Sequence record: OP617745.1 | Direction: 5' to 3' (one strand) | DNA length: 64,000 bases | Shown: positions 45,033 to 56,331 of the stretch, one piece after another | Layout of the letters: every line of letters starts with the position of its first letter | How positions within the stretch are numbered: the first letter of the stretch is position 1 | The notes under the pieces: generated by a model | What the model was told of the DNA's origin: nothing | Databases searched by the model: none | The model's input: only the letters and a program-made list of their open reading frames with translations | Position numbers and translations under genes: made by a program

Positions 45033-45324
45033 TATAGAAGAAATTATTCTTATGCTAAAAGAAGAAAGGCAAAAACAAATTCATAGTCCAAATACTTTAG
45101 GTGATACAAATAAAACAAAAAATGACTGGACTGCATTATGTGCTTACTATTTGTTTGAAGGAGCAAGTAGACCAGATAAACATGTATCATTTGATGAATT
45201 CAGAACATCATTGATTAAAGCAGGTGCTGTTATTATTGCAGCACTTGAAACGAGTTTCGCTTTAGAAGATGAAAAACTAAAAGACTTGATGAATAAGCTT
45301 GAGAATAATCATGACGAAGAATGA
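45019..45324 (+). CDS. Small all-alpha protein (possibly MazG-like)
   Basis: EERQKQ...W...LIKAGAVIIAALE pattern; weak. Confidence 0.4.
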   Translation: MPTISIEEIILMLKEERQKQIHSPNTLGDTNKTKNDWTALCAYYLFEGASRPDKHVSFDEFRTSLIKAGAVIIAALETSFALEDEKLKDLMNKLENNHDEE

Positions 45325-45901
45325 ACTTGATTCTTGGATCAGGTGTCAGACTAATACATTTTATAGTGGCGGAGCAGCAGGTGCTGACCGCCTTTTTACT
45401 TTATATGCAATTGAAAACGGTTTTGAATGTATCAATTTCTCTTTCAGTAAACATGTACATTATGTATCAGAAGAAACTGTACTGAGAATACCAGCAGATA
45501 TATTAGGTGACAATGAAATATATAATGAATTAGTTAGAGCATCCAGAAATTTATCGAAGAAAGTCCCACAAAAAAATACATACGTATATAACTTATTAGC
45601 TCGCAATAGCTATCAAATATTCAATACTGAACGTATATATTGTATTTCTACTTTAGTTTCTCCTAATACAGTTAGTGGTGGTACATCATGGGCTGTACAA
45701 ATGTTGATTAATAAAGAAGAACACCCAGAAATATATTTGTACGACTATTATGATAAATGCGTATATTCATACGATTCAGTACTGAAACAATTCACTGAAG
45801 TATTTTTTGTTCCTACCCCTCATGGAAACTGGACTGGAATAGGATCAAGAAATGCAGAACCAAAACATTTAGAACATTTTAAAACATTTTTCAAGGATTA
45901 A
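45311..45901 (+). CDS. SLOG-superfamily (YpsA/DprA-like) nucleotide-binding protein
   Basis: SGGAAGAD; LLARNSYQI; GGTSWAV; WTGIGSR. Confidence 0.6.
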   Translation: MTKNELDSWIRCQTNTFYSGGAAGADRLFTLYAIENGFECINFSFSKHVHYVSEETVLRIPADILGDNEIYNELVRASRNLSKKVPQKNTYVYNLLARNSYQIFNTERIYCISTLVSPNTVSGGTSWAVQMLINKEEHPEIYLYDYYDKCVYSYDSVLKQFTEVFFVPTPHGNWTGIGSRNAEPKHLEHFKTFFKD

Positions 45902-45903
45902 AA

Positions 45904-47457
45904 ATGAAACAACTATTAGACTTATATGATAAAATCTTGAAAGAAGGAGTACAAAGTACAGACCGAACAGGTGTAGGTACTATTAAACTCATAGGTCAAC
46001 AAATGCGTTTTGATTTGAGTAAAGGGTTTCCAGCAGTAACTACCAAAAGGTTAGCATGGAAAGCAATGGTATCTGAATTACTATGGTTTATTGAAGGTTC
46101 CCATGACGAGCGTCGTTTGTGTGAAATTCTTCATGGTACTCGTGATTCGGAAAAGAAAACTATTTGGAGCGATAACTGTTTAGATCGTGCGAAAAATGAT
46201 CCGAACAGATTTAATGGTGAAATTGTTGGTAATATGTATGGTATGAATTGGCGTTATCAACCATCTGAACCACATAGTTATCAATTCATTAAGAGAAAAT
46301 CTTATATTGATGATTATGTTGAAAAACATGTTTGTCCAGAAATTACTAGTGAATTTAATGGCATTAAAATACACCAGTCGGCTACATGTGGTGAATATGA
46401 AGTTGTTGGAAAGCAAAACAATAATATAGTTATACGTTTTTTAGATACCGGATCTTATAAAATAGTAAAAAGAACTTCAAGAAGTATTAAAGATTTTTTT
46501 AAACCATCAATAGAAGGGGTCGGATATTTAGGTGGTGTAATTCCTGATACATTAACTGCGAGAAAATTATATCAAATTTGGAAAGATATGATTATAAGAG
46601 TATATAATCCTAGAAAAAATCATGTATCATATAAAGACGTAACTGTTTGTAAACGTTGGCATAATTTTATGAATTTTTATAATGATTCCTTTTCATTATG
46701 GGGATTCCAAGAATTTGTTGATAGTGGTTATTCGCATCAACTTGATAAAGATTATTATGGTTCAAACATTTATTCACCTGATACTTGTATTTTCATATCA
46801 TCATCATTGAATAAAACATTAAATGGTGGTGGTTATGGATTTAAAATCTATATTTACAAAGATAATATATTTTATTCAATAACCGATTTACAAAAATATC
46901 GTGGATTATCAAGAAAAGCACAACTTCCAAAAGAGTTAACTATATTAGAAGATAATGAAACTCATGTAGTAAGGCCAAAAATATATATTGATCAACTTCA
47001 ACGTTGTATTGATTTAATAAAAAATGACCCAGATTCTAGAAGAATTGTTATTACATCATGGAATTCTAGAGATATTGAAAATGCAGCATTGGGTATGTGT
47101 CACCCATTAGTTCAATGGTTTGTTATTAATGGTAAATTATCATGCATATTCTATATGCGTAGCACAGATAGCTTTCTTGGTTTGCCTTTTAATATTGCAT
47201 CATATGCACTACTTACCCATATGATAGCACAAATTACTGGATTAGAAGTAGGTGAATTAATTTATAATGGTGGTGATTGTCACATTTATTTGAATCATAT
47301 TGAGCAAGTGAAAGAACAATTACAACGAGAACCAATGGAATTACCAAAATTATGGTTAGATCCCACTATAACCGATATTGAATCGTTCACAATGGGTTCA
47401 TTTAAACTATTGGATTATAATCCAATGCCAACTATTAAAGCACCAATGGCAGTATAA
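45904..47457 (+). CDS. thyA: Thymidylate synthase carrying an in-frame ~240-aa HNH-like insertion
   Basis: DRTGVGT, GFPAVTTK, SELLWF, YGMNWR ... IDQLQ...DPDSRRIV..WN, catalytic MCH, RSTDSFLGLPFNIASY, GGDCHIYLNH. Confidence 0.92.
   Translation: MKQLLDLYDKILKEGVQSTDRTGVGTIKLIGQQMRFDLSKGFPAVTTKRLAWKAMVSELLWFIEGSHDERRLCEILHGTRDSEKKTIWSDNCLDRAKNDPNRFNGEIVGNMYGMNWRYQPSEPHSYQFIKRKSYIDDYVEKHVCPEITSEFNGIKIHQSATCGEYEVVGKQNNNIVIRFLDTGSYKIVKRTSRSIKDFFKPSIEGVGYLGGVIPDTLTARKLYQIWKDMIIRVYNPRKNHVSYKDVTVCKRWHNFMNFYNDSFSLWGFQEFVDSGYSHQLDKDYYGSNIYSPDTCIFISSSLNKTLNGGGYGFKIYIYKDNIFYSITDLQKYRGLSRKAQLPKELTILEDNETHVVRPKIYIDQLQRCIDLIKNDPDSRRIVITSWNSRDIENAALGMCHPLVQWFVINGKLSCIFYMRSTDSFLGLPFNIASYALLTHMIAQITGLEVGELIYNGGDCHIYLNHIEQVKEQLQREPMELPKLWLDPTITDIESFTMGSFKLLDYNPMPTIKAPMAV
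46255..46980 (+). mobile_element. HNH/beta-beta-alpha-Me endonuclease-like domain inserted in frame in thyA
   Basis: KLYQIWKDMIIRVY..SYKDVTVCKRWHNFMNF...QLDKDYYGSNIYSPDTCIFISSSLN. Confidence 0.7.
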
Positions 47458-47460
47458 TAA

Positions 47461-47488
47461 AAAAGGGAGACATTAAGTCTCCTTTTTT
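47461..47488. terminator. Bidirectional terminator between convergent genes
   Basis: AAAAGGGAGAC-ATTAA-GTCTCCTTTTTTT. Confidence 0.8.
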
Positions 47489-49020
47489 TATACACCGACA
47501 ACACAACGACCGAGGAATCTCATATCAGGTTCCATCGGAACTTGTAGTTTTACTTTATCCAGTTCAATTGACATATTCTCTACTGCAACATTTTCATAAA
47601 ACCCATTTGACATAAGTTCTTGTACCTGTACTGACTTTGGTTCATCTACGGTAATGACCAATTCATAGTTGATACCATCACTTGAAGGTACCCACGAAGA
47701 CATGTCAGAAATGTTTATTGTTTCGGAACCACTAATACGTTTCCATTTACCACTGATTTTTTGAATTAATGTATTAAAGCTAGGAGAAAAAGCTAACATG
47801 CCATTTTCACCTAAAGTATTATTGGATGCATCAATAAATGGTGGTCTAAACCCAATCTCTGTTAATTTAGTTTCCCCATTATAGCCATCAACCGTCGGAT
47901 TTTGTGGGAAAAATAAAATTTCAGTATTTTTCCAACGCTGAACTTCTTTCGATGAGGCAGTTGCAGAAAACTCACCAGTTACCGAACCCCTGTGATATAA
48001 ACCAGTACTACTATCAGACCATTTACTTGGGTCAATTCCGGGGTTTTCAGTTGGATCATAGGTCTTGTTGTTAAATGTAATCGCTGGTTTATCAACAGTA
48101 CCATATATTGCTGCAAAACGTCCCTCAGCTTCTGAAATACCATCATCATACATTGCATCACCGGTTCTACGTAAACCATCTAAACCATATAAATCAAGTA
48201 CGGATTGTACATCGGAAACTGATGTTGGGAATTGTCGTCCATATGAATTTACTAGTTTATTATCAAATGTAACACTTGTGGCTGCAATACGGGTAGCATA
48301 CTGACGAAGACTTTGCCATTTAGTACCAGTACTGATGATCCAGTCACTATCACGTAAGCCTGGGTCATAACTAGCATTACCAACCTCGAATTGTTCTGTT
48401 AGATCTGGGTCTGATGTTAATGATATAAGACCTTCATGACCAGTAGTTGGGATTTGATCTACATTAAATCTTGCATAAGCAGAGGTAACTGATTTAGAAC
48501 CATTACCATCTGTGGTAAAATAATATTTAATTTCCAACCAGTCACCCTCACCTGATGGGTTAGTTGGTGTGAATATAACTGGTGATGTTGAAGGATTTGT
48601 AGTACTCATGTGAGTAGTAGCTATATCAACAATACCACGAGTTACGTAATAATCACCTGAATTGGTTGAGTCCGTTGGCGGTAGATTATCGTAAACCGAA
48701 ATTTCTGATGGTGGATCTACATCATCGGTATTTGGATTAAAAGTACCTTTATATGTCATACCATTCAATAATGTATCTGGTAAATTTGCAATTGAAATTT
48801 TACCATTAGCATCTAATTGAACAAAACGTCGATATTCCACTGTATCATCTAATAATTGTAATGTACCTTCAAAAGCTTCCCATTCACTATTATAACGAAT
48901 CATTCCCGGACGTTTAATGTCATTTGGTGGATTTTTCAATAGTGCTTTTGGTAATTCCAAGAAACCATTAGTACTATCGATAATAACACCAGAATCACCA
49001 CGTATTCTATATATACTCAT
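47488..49020 (-). CDS. Probable virion structural (tail/baseplate appendage) protein
   Basis: 510 aa; GMIRYNSEWEAFEG and YKGTFNP motifs typical of phage structural proteins. Confidence 0.6.
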   Translation of the reverse strand: MSIYRIRGDSGVIIDSTNGFLELPKALLKNPPNDIKRPGMIRYNSEWEAFEGTLQLLDDTVEYRRFVQLDANGKISIANLPDTLLNGMTYKGTFNPNTDDVDPPSEISVYDNLPPTDSTNSGDYYVTRGIVDIATTHMSTTNPSTSPVIFTPTNPSGEGDWLEIKYYFTTDGNGSKSVTSAYARFNVDQIPTTGHEGLISLTSDPDLTEQFEVGNASYDPGLRDSDWIISTGTKWQSLRQYATRIAATSVTFDNKLVNSYGRQFPTSVSDVQSVLDLYGLDGLRRTGDAMYDDGISEAEGRFAAIYGTVDKPAITFNNKTYDPTENPGIDPSKWSDSSTGLYHRGSVTGEFSATASSKEVQRWKNTEILFFPQNPTVDGYNGETKLTEIGFRPPFIDASNNTLGENGMLAFSPSFNTLIQKISGKWKRISGSETINISDMSSWVPSSDGINYELVITVDEPKSVQVQELMSNGFYENVAVENMSIELDKVKLQVPMEPDMRFLGRCVVGV

Positions 49021-53053: not shown

Positions 53054-53527
53054 TTAAAAATATGGTTCACTATTTAAACTGTTGACAAACACAGTCCCTT
53101 TCTTTATACTTTCATACAGAGATTTAAAATCCTTCATTAAATTTTCATTAAGTAGTGTGCTTTTAGCACCAGGATGTAATCTTAGACTTTTATACGAACC
53201 AATTTCTACCCAAGAATATCCAGAGCTTTCGTGATTCAGTACAGGAATAAATTCATTTTCAACTACTATAACAAATGAATAATATTTGAATTTACCATTT
53301 TTAGTACTGAATACATCAAAAGGTATAATATCTTCAATATCGGGAACAGAATTACCTAATTCTTCTTGTATTTCTCTGTACAATGCTTGTAATGGTGTTT
53401 CATTATTTTGAAGTTTTCCTCCTACAAATCCCCAGTTATTACTATAGGTAGCACTTTCCGAACGTAAATTGAGCATCATTCTTCCTGTATTCTTGGATAG
53501 GAATATAGCACCAACTGCTTCATTCAT
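53054..53527 (-). CDS. Nudix hydrolase
   Basis: WGFVGGKLQNNETPLQALYREIQEELG; LNHESSGYSW; LHPG. Confidence 0.88.
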   Translation of the reverse strand: MNEAVGAIFLSKNTGRMMLNLRSESATYSNNWGFVGGKLQNNETPLQALYREIQEELGNSVPDIEDIIPFDVFSTKNGKFKYYSFVIVVENEFIPVLNHESSGYSWVEIGSYKSLRLHPGAKSTLLNENLMKDFKSLYESIKKGTVFVNSLNSEPYF

Positions 53528-53539
53528 AGAAACTCCTTG

Positions 53540-54865
53540 TTAGTTTTTATCACGAAATGTAATACGCCAATAACCAGCAGTGTATTTTGGTTTAACCGAT
53601 CTAGACCAACCCAAACGCTTATTATATTTGTAATAATGAGTATCATCTCTGTTATAGATATAATTTGATACAGTTTCTGGATCAATCAAATCTGCACCTG
53701 TGTTGGTTATTTTAAATAGCATATTAGGTTCAATTGATGTATCTTTGTATTGAATAGAACATTTTGAATTATTAACATAATATTGTTCTGGTATAGCATT
53801 ATTTAGTTCAGAAATTTTAGATACTAATTTGATAATATTAAAATTCGTACTATACTGTAAAGGATCAATTTCAACTGTTAACTTATTTGCATCATCACCA
53901 CTACCAATAGATGTTACTATCCCCTTTAATGGGTTAGTTTCTTCGATTGCAGTTTGGAATCTTATGGTAATTTCCTTATCTTCATAATCTGGATCTAAAT
54001 ACTGGAAATATTTTTTCCATGAATAAATCCCACCAGTATCTGCTTTTGGACTTCCTGATTGAGAGATTAAAGTAATTTCAAAAATATTATCAGTTTGTTC
54101 TTCAGTACCTATACCCAAATTCTTTGGTGTAAAAACATCAACGATTGGATCTTCAAAATCAAAGTTCATATCTTTTTCAGGAATATATGTTGTCATATTA
54201 GTGTTGATTTGGTTAATTAGTTTTGGTTTTTCAACCCTAGCAGGTAAAGAAAACCATATAGTAGTTTCGAATTTAAATACTGCAATATCCAAATCAGTAT
54301 CATTACCCTGTGGTACACCCCTTGTACTAAATGTTGTATCTACCAATTCCACATTTTCAATACTGGTCCAATCAAGTGGGTTATTGGACATTTGCATTTG
54401 TACACTTGGTGCAAAGAGTGTACAAATTTGTTCCCACAATTCCATTTTAGCTTGCAATTGTGTAGTCCATATGTTAAGATTGAATACAAATTTATATGGT
54501 ACTGGATTGTGTCGTGTAACTTTGTACATTTTATCGATTTCGTGTATATAATTACCATTATCATCAGTTTTATTAGTTGCGAATACTGAAATATCATCTG
54601 CATTAGAACGCGTTGATTTTCTATCCACATTTAAGCTTTCTACACTGATAGTCATAATAGGTGCTGAATTTATGATATTTTCACTACCACTATTAATAAT
54701 ATAGGCAGCCATTTTTGAAATATCTGCATAACGAACCGGAACTTCTCGGTATCGTGGTTTGCCTTCATCATCAACACCATTTTGTACAGTAAAACCACTG
54801 AATAAACGAATAAGATGAGTTAATTCTCTATGAAATTGTCCATCATAATAATAATCTAGTTTCAT
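53540..54865 (-). CDS. Tail sheath stabiliser / tail completion protein (T4 gp15-like)
   Basis: YYYDGQF.R.L...IRLFS.F; VPVRYAD; PVPY.F.FNLNIWT...K.ELWEQI..LF.P. Confidence 0.65.
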   Translation of the reverse strand: MKLDYYYDGQFHRELTHLIRLFSGFTVQNGVDDEGKPRYREVPVRYADISKMAAYIINSGSENIINSAPIMTISVESLNVDRKSTRSNADDISVFATNKTDDNGNYIHEIDKMYKVTRHNPVPYKFVFNLNIWTTQLQAKMELWEQICTLFAPSVQMQMSNNPLDWTSIENVELVDTTFSTRGVPQGNDTDLDIAVFKFETTIWFSLPARVEKPKLINQINTNMTTYIPEKDMNFDFEDPIVDVFTPKNLGIGTEEQTDNIFEITLISQSGSPKADTGGIYSWKKYFQYLDPDYEDKEITIRFQTAIEETNPLKGIVTSIGSGDDANKLTVEIDPLQYSTNFNIIKLVSKISELNNAIPEQYYVNNSKCSIQYKDTSIEPNMLFKITNTGADLIDPETVSNYIYNRDDTHYYKYNKRLGWSRSVKPKYTAGYWRITFRDKN

Positions 54866-54867
54866 TG

Positions 54868-56331
54868 TTATTCTTTCCTATATTTTGGTGTACTTGCAAT
54901 ATCATGCAATGGCATTCTATCTGAACTGTTGACGAAATTTACAAGTTCTGGGTCTGAACCTAACCATGGAATTCTGTTACCATAATCGAATACTACCCAT
55001 GATTGACTGTCGGCATTGTATTTCCAACATGTGACCGGATTATAGTCAGTTCTGAAAAAATATTCTCCATCAGTTGGTGTAGATGGAAACTCGGTACCTT
55101 CTGGTACTGAACCCCTTTGTGGTGGAATTTCCGGTCTGTAGTTATTAGGAACATCAATAATATCATTAATATTAGAAGTATTGAAATTAAATTTTCCTGG
55201 GAAATTAGATGGAATAATCCACAAATCATCTTTGTATTGATATACTTGTGAATCACTATATTTTACATAAAACTCTATGTTATTCTTAGGTTGTTTATCT
55301 TCCTTACTATATTCAACATCACATAGCAACCAACTATTACTTGAGTTATCGTACTGGTACAATGAAAAACCACTTACATTAGTACTATCTTCTTTAAAGA
55401 AGAAATCACCATCAGTTGGATTGGATGGGAAGTTAATATCATACCCAGTACTGACAACATTCCACATATCATCAACATTCTCTTTAAGTACAGGTTTAGT
55501 CTTTTTAAGATATAGCATATTATTAGCTGGTTCTTCTGGGAAGTCATATCCATTTAGCATACTTTTAGATAGGTCTACATAGTCAATTCGTGGATCATAA
55601 AACTGTTCATTATCAAAATTGAGATAAGGTACATCATTTTCAGCTATTGTGATTATTTTATTCATTATATCCATTTCATTTTGATAATTACTGTTGTTAT
55701 TACCATTACCGTTGCCATTATTTGGATCATCTGGGTTATCTGGATAACTATTGTTTTGTAGTAAATCTGAGTATTCAGGTGAATCAGTAATGGGTTTGAC
55801 TCGAATTTTCCATATATGAGCTTGCCACGTGGCAGAATATCCTTCATATGTTTTAAAAGCATCCTGTACTACATAAAAACGGTTTATACCACTATCTTTA
55901 CCAATAACATCGAAATCACGTAAATTTGGTAGTTCAATAACATCACCCGGAAGAATCTTTCTTCCTAAACGTTTCATCATATCGTTATAATGAACAGTTA
56001 TATCCATTGTATTAAAATCAAAAAACAGGCCAGGGAGTTTCATGTCGGGAGTTGCTTCTTGCACTTGATAGACACATGAAAATGTGATAGCCTCTAGATT
56101 ATATTTTCTATTCGAGGTGTCACCAAAAACCCAATCGCTAACACTGTTGATATCAAAGCTTGACTCTGAACTGGAAGTTGTTGTATAATCACCAGTACTG
56201 GACGTTGGTTTTTCACCACAGTACGCGTAAAGCCACATGTCAACGCCACCTATGTTGTATTGTTCGGCAATGGCAGAATCAATAAAAGAGTAATCATTCG
56301 TTCTGCCTTTTTTCCACATCTTATAAGCCAT
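54868..56331 (-). CDS. Neck / head-closure protein (T4 gp14-like)
   Basis: DY.FID..I.EQY.IGG; FGD...RKY; ITVHYNDM...LGRK..PGDVIELP. Confidence 0.6.
   Translation of the reverse strand: MAYKMWKKGRTNDYSFIDSAIAEQYNIGGVDMWLYAYCGEKPTSSTGDYTTTSSSESSFDINSVSDWVFGDTSNRKYNLEAITFSCVYQVQEATPDMKLPGLFFDFNTMDITVHYNDMMKRLGRKILPGDVIELPNLRDFDVIGKDSGINRFYVVQDAFKTYEGYSATWQAHIWKIRVKPITDSPEYSDLLQNNSYPDNPDDPNNGNGNGNNNSNYQNEMDIMNKIITIAENDVPYLNFDNEQFYDPRIDYVDLSKSMLNGYDFPEEPANNMLYLKKTKPVLKENVDDMWNVVSTGYDINFPSNPTDGDFFFKEDSTNVSGFSLYQYDNSSNSWLLCDVEYSKEDKQPKNNIEFYVKYSDSQVYQYKDDLWIIPSNFPGKFNFNTSNINDIIDVPNNYRPEIPPQRGSVPEGTEFPSTPTDGEYFFRTDYNPVTCWKYNADSQSWVVFDYGNRIPWLGSDPELVNFVNSSDRMPLHDIASTPKYRKE

Follow-up and report, generated by a model that had tools for sequence, protein, structure and literature searches.

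Homing endonuclease genes are thought to persist in essential genes only with help, which comes either from a self-splicing intron or intein or from the splitting of the host gene into working pieces. In Aeromonas phage Aeh1, nrdA is split by mobE, a free-standing endonuclease gene (Friedrich et al. 2007, as cited in PMC10448857). In phage ICP1, gp59, gp115-116 and gp209 have been named "IPA-HNH" putative homing endonucleases, the HNH domain of gp59, gp115 and gp209 being detectable by HHsearch only (Barth, Dunham and Seed 2023, PMC10448857); nuclease activity is no more than a prediction for the IPA-HNH family itself, and the paper makes no mention of thymidylate synthase (TS). Here, we describe a TS gene, thyA, that carries a related module in frame, in a stretch of 64,000 nucleotides (nt) from sequence record OP617745.1, referred to below as the window. 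The open reading frame (ORF) at 45904–47457 (+), taken from the ORF list and its translation, is identical to the annotated thyA of Klebsiella phage KP13-7, a jumbo phage of Alcyoneusvirus that the window matches at 100% identity, and its product is a TS of 517 amino acids (aa) with an in-frame insert. The explanation that we favor, and hold to be probable by a modest measure, is that an intact, unspliced homing-endonuclease-like module lies in a TS loop and moves as a cassette, its nuclease activity and active homing being presumed.

The Thymidylate Synthase and Its In-Frame Insert

The 517-aa protein has the full-length fold and the profile match of a TS, with the match to PF00303 (E 1.6e-87) split in two pieces (Pfam), and TS profiles and solved TS structures cover aa 1 to ~122 and ~359 to 517, also in two pieces (Pfam, NCBIfam, PDB). 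The N-terminal TS segment, 45904–46254 (+), comprises aa 1–117 (R21, E58, W88, Y112, W116) and aligns to solved TS structures, and the C-terminal segment, 46984–47454 (+), comprises aa ~361–517 (R379, R380, C399, H400, R419, S420, D422, N430, H460, Y462), with a TS-structure alignment at 1.5e-51; both segments contain invariant columns of alignment A1. The catalytic and substrate-binding residues, namely R21, E58 and Y112 of the first segment and all those listed for the second, were present and invariant among the relatives in this alignment, and we take their equivalents in E. coli TS to be R21, E58, Y94, R126′, R127′, C146, H147, R166, S167, D169, N177, H207 and Y209. Judged by these residues, the TS part of the protein appears to be catalytically complete.

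The insert, an IPA-HNH-like homing-endonuclease-type module, was located at 46255–46983 (+), spanning aa 118 to ~360 (boundaries ±3 aa; ~243 aa, 729 nt), between Y112-G-M-N-W116-R117 and I362-D363-Q364-L365. This bears out the preliminary description of the locus, which had placed an extra segment at 46255–46980 between YGMNWR and IDQL of a 517-aa ThyA, and whose quoted insert motifs and junction residues were all correct in the translation; GEYEVVG, IRFLDTG, GVGYLG, YQIWKDM, VCKRWHNFMNF, LDKD and YSPDTCIF are found in the insert. Human TS has an insertion of ~12 aa in the same loop, after the YG.QWR motif, and the K64-1-type phage TS carries its own segment of ~37 aa there. The 50-aa TS insertion of L. 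casei and E. faecalis was considered as an occupant of the same site and rejected, as the E. faecalis alignment places it ahead of the YG.QWR motif. An assembly artefact was also rejected, with the same allele being found in phiKp_21 (99.8%), in UE-S1 and in several independent metagenome runs.

The continuous, stop-free frame that had been reported was confirmed, since none of 2000 shuffles of the insert (27% G+C) remained open and the remaining two frames hold 19 and 34 stops, so that the frame is open beyond chance. Comparison with the 87%-identical UE-S1 allele gave an omega (dN/dS) of 0.156 for the insert, which indicates purifying selection, and the boundary segments of the insert gave omega values of 0.17 and 0.22 with a synonymous divergence (dS) of 0.6–0.8, suggesting constraint on codons and not on RNA structure. 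The frame is continuous with both TS parts in every relative examined, at insert identities from 27% to 87%. The first ATG inside the insert is M229, so the module lacks an obvious start of its own; having neither its own start nor its own stop, it lies in frame inside thyA and is not a free-standing gene. An internal promoter for separate expression of the module was rejected, the promoter-like sites being no more frequent than expected from shuffled sequence.

An AlphaFold2 (AF2) model of the 517-aa protein, built on a 141-sequence alignment, reached a predicted local distance difference test score (pLDDT) of 95.9 and a predicted TM score (pTM) of 0.92, and in this model the module is folded and holds a defined position on the TS; a single-sequence AlphaFold model (pLDDT 35) was discarded. 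The insert contains an N-terminal beta module of SH3/Tudor/KOW-like type at 46354–46488 (+; aa ~151–195), and a fold search assigned residues 144–194 as SH3/Tudor-like. The conserved core at 46489–46839 (+; aa 196–312) consists of a GxGxxG loop, a long helix (W226, R232, Y234), the segment C249-x2-W252-H253 and then what appears to be a beta-beta-alpha unit, and the putative active-site motif, D281-K282-D283 ... Y290 ... T294-C295 ... N303, lies at 46744–46812 (+). The C-terminal tail at 46840–46983 (+; aa ~313–360) contains a small beta/alpha unit, possibly DNA-binding, and strands that return to the TS; aa 313–349 form a small beta/alpha fold in the AF2 model, and residues 305–349 gave a weak match to the I-TevI DNA-binding domain in the fold search. 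A Foldseek search of the whole model against PDB and BFVD returned lists filled by TS and was uninformative on the insert. The insert has the full architecture of a homing-endonuclease-like protein.

Another explanation is that the insert is removed before the mature enzyme is formed, either as an unusual group I intron with an in-frame ORF or as a non-canonical intein. The gene itself makes this worth considering, since thyA/td is a classic group I intron host and, in the sister phage RCIP0023 of Klebsiella, thyA is interrupted by 1029 nt that hold an I-TevI-like ORF. The junctions of the KP13-7 insert, WR|YQP and KIY|IDQ, however, lack a Cys/Ser/Thr start, a His-Asn end and a nucleophile at +1, and no Hint or intein domain was found in the insert by Pfam or by the fold search; from its sequence the insert is not an intein, as had been stated of the canonical type. 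As an intron it is unlikely because the whole insert is selected coding sequence: all 729 nt form a frame continuous with the TS over the full range of insert identities, synonymous change is abundant even at the boundaries with no visible RNA-structure constraint, and, with the protein-homologous core taken into account, there is not enough non-coding sequence left to form a ribozyme. The Rfam model Intron_gpI gave no match at E ≤ 10, a result without weight, since it missed the RCIP0023 insertion, used as a positive control, at both thresholds as well. In addition, the AF2 model places the insert as an integral domain, and contigs from four wastewater RNA libraries cross both junctions (45982–46276 and 46928–47152) with no joint that skips the insert among them, at thin coverage and with DNA carry-over possible. 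Removal by splicing is, in our judgment, highly improbable, and we infer that the module is kept in the mature protein without RNA or protein splicing.

The RCIP0023 insertion (L002:2037–3065) lies after nt 632, at codon ~211, which is equivalent to R419 here, and an insertion of this kind also occurs in vB_KpnM_W12-3, as judged by span. It encodes an I-TevI-like endonuclease with GIY-YIG, I-TevI zinc finger, NUMOD3 and I-TevI DNA-binding domains. In KP13-7, FLGLPFN is uninterrupted (aa 424–430), in agreement with the earlier statement that the insert and the td-type intron occupy different sites. Two unrelated types of element have therefore entered thyA within a single phage genus, each at a site of its own.

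The Module Family and Its History in Thymidylate Synthases

A total of 5996 cluster representatives were related to the insert at E ≤ 1e-3 in an exhaustive HMMER scan, and most of them are free-standing phage proteins of 170–260 aa with the layout of the insert, comprising the beta module, the G.G..G loop, the long helix with W226/R232/Y234, the C..W.NF.NF segment and LDKD...YSP.TC...N. In annotated phages, the genes adjoining these free-standing relatives encode DNA polymerase, primase, ribonucleotide reductase and terminase, and some relatives contain NUMOD or I-HmuI-like DNA-binding modules. The gp59 of ICP1 is a member of the family (tblastn E 1e-10 to 5e-11; 34–36% identity, 36% over 134 aa), its core being aligned throughout and placed in one tree with the insert. 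Partial matches to the insert were also given by the PHROG "HNH endonuclease" families 2081, 953 and 374. Pfam found no AP2 domain in the insert, and it also misses AP2 in gp59 and in Hoody T gp200 at E ≤ 0.1. Eight free-standing relatives of 350–720 aa (P0013, P0014, P0015, P0021, P0024, P0042, P0076 and P0112) hold two tandem copies of the module per protein.

The D-K-D motif was present in 110/110 free-standing sequences, and among the 30 TS-embedded sequences D281 and K282 were each kept in 29 and D283 in 28; N303 was found in 106/110 and 26/30, respectively. The KP13-7 copy retains every near-invariant residue of the family.

Fusions of the type TS-N/insert/TS-C at the same site were found in 32 of the 150 best representatives, each of which stands for one 50%-identity cluster, and a structure search of the ESM Atlas returned only a 54-member viral cluster of long TS with the same shape. 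In the module tree, the TS-embedded copies form one main clade and one small group with phage ph0011, with 7 label changes between TS-embedded and other copies, compared with 31 when the labels were shuffled. The 17 closest relatives of the insert-adjacent TS core, from 100% down to 63% identity, are all long (406–613 aa), with insert-free TS found only at ≤66% identity, and the divergence of the insert is more closely correlated with that of the TS flanks beside it (Mantel r 0.68) than with that of the distal TS ends (r 0.39). These counts, the tree, the long nearest relatives and the co-divergence together indicate that the module and its neighboring TS core are an old, co-inherited unit. 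The arrangement is widespread in phages and seems to be undescribed, as a TS with an embedded module of this kind was not found described in the searchable literature.

Several states of the module were observed. Nearly all of the full-length forms (505–613 aa) retain D-K-D, Y290, T294-C295 and N303; the beta module, though not the motif, is gone from a 468-aa form, and forms of 406–429 aa have lost both. The Td of all Krischvirus (RB49-like) phages, at 406–410 aa, carries a truncated, motif-less remnant of the module and is annotated as plain thymidylate synthase; an example is Escherichia phage JSE (L005:1501–2724), and cluster P0167 has 271 members. The loss of the motif in the 406–429-aa forms implies that TS has no need of an intact module, and its strict conservation wherever the module is full-length suggests that the module is selected for an activity of its own. 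Since short forms in decay are known, and have become fixed in Krischvirus, the KP13-7 insert might likewise be a dead passenger that is not cleanly deletable and has no present function; with every near-invariant residue kept and an omega of 0.16, this is improbable, and KP13-7 carries the intact state of the module.

Long and Short Alleles in Jumbo Phages

A TS of 309 aa, with a different loop segment of ~37 aa, is encoded by K64-1, RaK2 and Muenster (Alcyoneusvirus), by 121Q and by most Asteriusvirus. Long alleles are of two types, one shared by KP13-7/phiKp_21 and UE-S1 and a second, divergent one in ph0011. The thyA of Escherichia phage ph0011 (L004:1501–3141) encodes 546 aa and is annotated as "hypothetical protein"; its insert is 27% identical to that of KP13-7 and belongs to a separate small clade of TS-embedded inserts, and its distal TS ends are 69–85% identical. 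The short allele of Escherichia phage CMSTMSU (L007:1501–2428) is annotated as two overlapping coding sequences (CDS), 1501–1962 and 1940–2428, a split due either to a frameshift or to faulty sequencing, the record being marked "UNVERIFIED_ORG".

KP13-7 and K64-1 are 95% identical around thyA, and by blastn their homology ends at 46175 and resumes at 47165, in agreement with the sliding identity. The segment between, 46176–47164 (+), has no nucleotide homology to the short allele of K64-1 by blastn and holds the insert together with ~80 nt of TS sequence upstream and ~180 nt downstream. UE-S1 and 121Q break at equivalent places, so that the breaks fall at thyA nt ~272 and ~1262–1304 in both genera, and the exchanged TS flanks (~80 nt upstream, ~180–220 nt downstream) are only ~55% identical to the short allele. 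From these break positions, the exchanged unit is ~1 kb and consists of the insert and its TS flanks. The distribution is as homing would leave it, being sporadic among close relatives, with flanking sequence exchanged along with the insert, in two genera. The preliminary description had called for the distribution in relatives, and insert-free alleles do occur in close relatives, with the long allele having the appearance of a horizontally exchanged cassette. Its picture of a nuclease newly inserted into an otherwise ordinary thyA did not hold, since the insert and the TS core form an old, diversified lineage and move together as a ~1-kb cassette.

The proportion of synonymous differences (pS) between KP13-7 and UE-S1 was 0.44 in the cassette and 0.61–0.69 in the distal ends of the same genes, which is suggestive of a cassette younger than its backbone. 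The hexamer AGTACT is found at 151 places in the window, where 16 would be expected (~9 times chance). It is absent from thyA, as had been noted, with ~3.7 expected in 1554 nt at the genome-wide rate (P ~0.026), a little below the four to five estimated before. Only two genes longer than 1.2 kb lack it, thyA being one of them; among the alleles, K64-1 and Muenster have two copies each and 121Q one (short), and KP13-7, UE-S1 and ph0011 have none (long). This absence is weakly consistent with a foreign origin of the long allele. The recent acquisition that had been proposed is therefore weakly supported, with P ~0.03 for AGTACT and a cassette pS marginally below its control. AGTACT-free spans are 45784–48003, 50–2328 and 53309–55380. 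GTAC occurs 489 times against ~196 expected, and AGTACT most often stands in the context (C)AGTACT(G). Its excess extends to all three codon phases (84/15/33) and at equal density in non-coding DNA, which marks it as a DNA-level feature of the phage, beyond Ser-Thr codon pairs; a modification, recognition or packaging motif is possible.

A mechanism can be proposed that would account for these patterns. The protein is one continuous polypeptide, a TS with an intact homing-endonuclease-like module in the surface loop after the YG.xWR motif. An SH3-like beta domain comes first in this module, followed by a core whose invariant Asp-Lys-Asp...Asn residues are carried by a beta-beta-alpha unit, and a small tail that resembles a DNA-binding domain ends it. 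Inheritance of the module together with the adjacent TS core, as one TS lineage, is of long standing, and in the RaK2/121Q-like jumbo phages a ~1-kb cassette has replaced the center of the resident 309-aa allele by recombination between phages. The embedded module may bind and cut the thyA alleles of co-infecting phages that are without it, and repair from the long allele would then copy the module with its short, co-adapted TS flanks. Homing of this kind would need neither intron nor intein and could be borne by the enzyme since its loop takes large insertions, and once fixed, the module would decay in frame, as in the Krischvirus Td. The continuous and selected frame, the kinship with the family, the kept motif, the sporadic presence, the mosaic alleles and the series of decayed forms are observed; that the module cuts DNA, recognizes a target, drives its own transfer and stays in the mature protein is the inferred part of this scheme.

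Several observations weigh against it. At E ≤ 1, no curated HNH model (PF01844, PF13392, PF14279 and others) matched the insert, nor did any match one of five free-standing relatives or of 81 family members, and Pfam and NCBIfam gave no match to the insert at all, with gp28 and gp80 of ICP1, used as a control, matching HNH/HNH_3. The family profile had no match among PDB sequences, and hhalign of alignment A5 against the canonical HNH endonucleases gp28 and gp80 gave a probability of ≤1.3%, with single-sequence templates and hence low power. Where HNH enzymes have the catalytic His, at the end of strand 1, Lys was found in all 110 free-standing sequences and in 29 of the 30 TS-embedded ones, and nuclease activity is known for no member of the IPA-HNH-like family. 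The label "HNH nuclease" is thus a hypothesis for the whole family, unproven for the insert because no curated model matches and Lys replaces the catalytic His; of the complete HNH-type endonuclease claimed in the preliminary description, the complete endonuclease-like module stands and the HNH assignment is putative. Moreover, the TS-embedded inserts are limited to one or two old clades, and no insert-free allele of the same TS lineage was found above 66% identity, as would be expected of a stable domain no less than of a mobile one. The cassette pS of 0.44 is only marginally below the control of 0.52–0.58 (central region, K64-1/121Q pair), by ~1.7 standard errors. The breakpoints lie in conserved TS patches, where ordinary homologous recombination would cross over too, and the RNA support is thin, contig-based and possibly includes DNA.

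The principal alternative draws on the same points. The insert may be a domesticated domain, derived from a homing endonuclease and now a fixed accessory domain of one TS lineage without nuclease-driven mobility, the jumbo-phage mosaics then being ordinary homologous recombination during co-infection; such a domain could serve in DNA or RNA binding or in the docking of a partner, for instance by tethering TS to replicating DNA or by regulating its own expression. An old and diversified TS association (32/150 representatives, one or two clades), nearest TS-core relatives that are all long, an insert that co-diverges with TS under purifying selection and a high pTM, suggestive of a co-adapted interface, would all be expected of it, as would the Lys at the catalytic His position, the missing HNH model match and a cassette whose youth is not significant against the control. 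However, the invariant motif is kept in full-length TS copies and yet has been lost repeatedly, with a whole subdomain, in apparently functional TS lineages, which looks like the decay of a selfish element and not like that of a domain needed by TS. The presence of the module is sporadic among 95%-identical sister phages, with two different long cassettes in one genus, and the free-standing relatives share the genomic habits of homing endonuclease genes. Domestication is, to us, a serious though doubtful explanation. The allele pattern is what homing with co-conversion would leave, and ordinary recombination at the conserved TS patches could leave it too; taking the whole together, we retain the intact, mobile module as our favored explanation.

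The genes around thyA were also inspected. The gene upstream, at 45299–45901 (+) in the window (L008:907–1498), is DprA-like/DUF2493 by annotation in relatives, gave only a weak YspA-related SLOG match here, adjoins thyA in both genera and is annotated as two CDS in phage Muenster. A gene for a 510-aa structural protein, 47488–49020 (−), converges on thyA, and the 30-nt gap between the two stop codons contains a terminator-like hairpin at 47466–47482 (−), to which weak Rfam sraA/STnc430 matches at 47395–47496 are probably due.

Significance and Comparison with Known Systems

An endonuclease-type module kept as a domain of an enzyme would be another solution to persistence in an essential gene, and may let a selfish nuclease gene sit there without an intron or intein. 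In its strongest form, this would be a fourth way into an essential gene, besides introns, inteins and gene splitting: an active, permanently retained nuclease domain in a permissive loop, with a bifunctional TS-nuclease that cuts the insert-free thyA of co-infecting phages, spreads as a cassette with co-adapted flanks and uses a His-less Asp-Lys-Asp variant of the His-Me finger. This is possible, and we put it forward tentatively. The arrangement is not rare, being present in dozens of 50%-identity clusters, including every Krischvirus Td, and in all of them the annotation gives nothing but thymidylate synthase. For experiments the system is a simple one, since a single gene is involved, the enzyme can be assayed and sister phages provide long and short alleles naturally, and it could address DNA cleavage by IPA-HNH proteins, the Lys-for-His active site and module-driven allele mosaicism in jumbo phages. 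The natural decay series from intact through truncated to motif-less forms would also serve for the study of the in-frame erosion of selfish elements.

Among the described systems, the IPA-HNH proteins (ICP1 gp59 and others) are similar in having a homologous core with the same beta module, W/R/Y helix, C..W.NF.NF segment and LDKD...YSP.TC...N motif, and in being phage-restricted and located beside essential genes. However, they are free-standing and end in a C-terminal AP2 or NUMOD, whereas the KP13-7 copy is enclosed in an enzyme, and its tail is short and without a detectable AP2. Endonuclease-bearing inteins, such as the LAGLIDADG intein of ICP1 NrdA, likewise place an endonuclease-type module in frame in an essential enzyme of nucleotide metabolism, within one precursor; unlike them, the KP13-7 insert is without a Hint domain or splicing residues, and its module presumably stays in the mature protein. 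The td/thyA group I introns with GIY-YIG endonucleases (T4 td/I-TevI; RCIP0023) share the host gene, the phage group and a sporadic presence in sister phages. The td-type element of RCIP0023 differs in its site (codon ~211 of the short allele, R419 here) and in its nuclease family, and it is a non-coding RNA with a separate, stop-bounded ORF, whereas the KP13-7 insert is coding throughout. Aeh1 nrdA/mobE is comparable in that an endonuclease gene sits in an essential gene without a self-splicing element and is tolerated since the host protein works, but the host gene there yields two polypeptides and KP13-7 thyA one fused chain. Finally, the variable-region insertions of TS (human, ~12 aa; K64-1-type, ~37 aa) occupy the same permissive surface loop; they are short and have neither an independent fold nor relatives, whereas that of KP13-7 is a multi-domain module of 243 aa with thousands of free-standing relatives.

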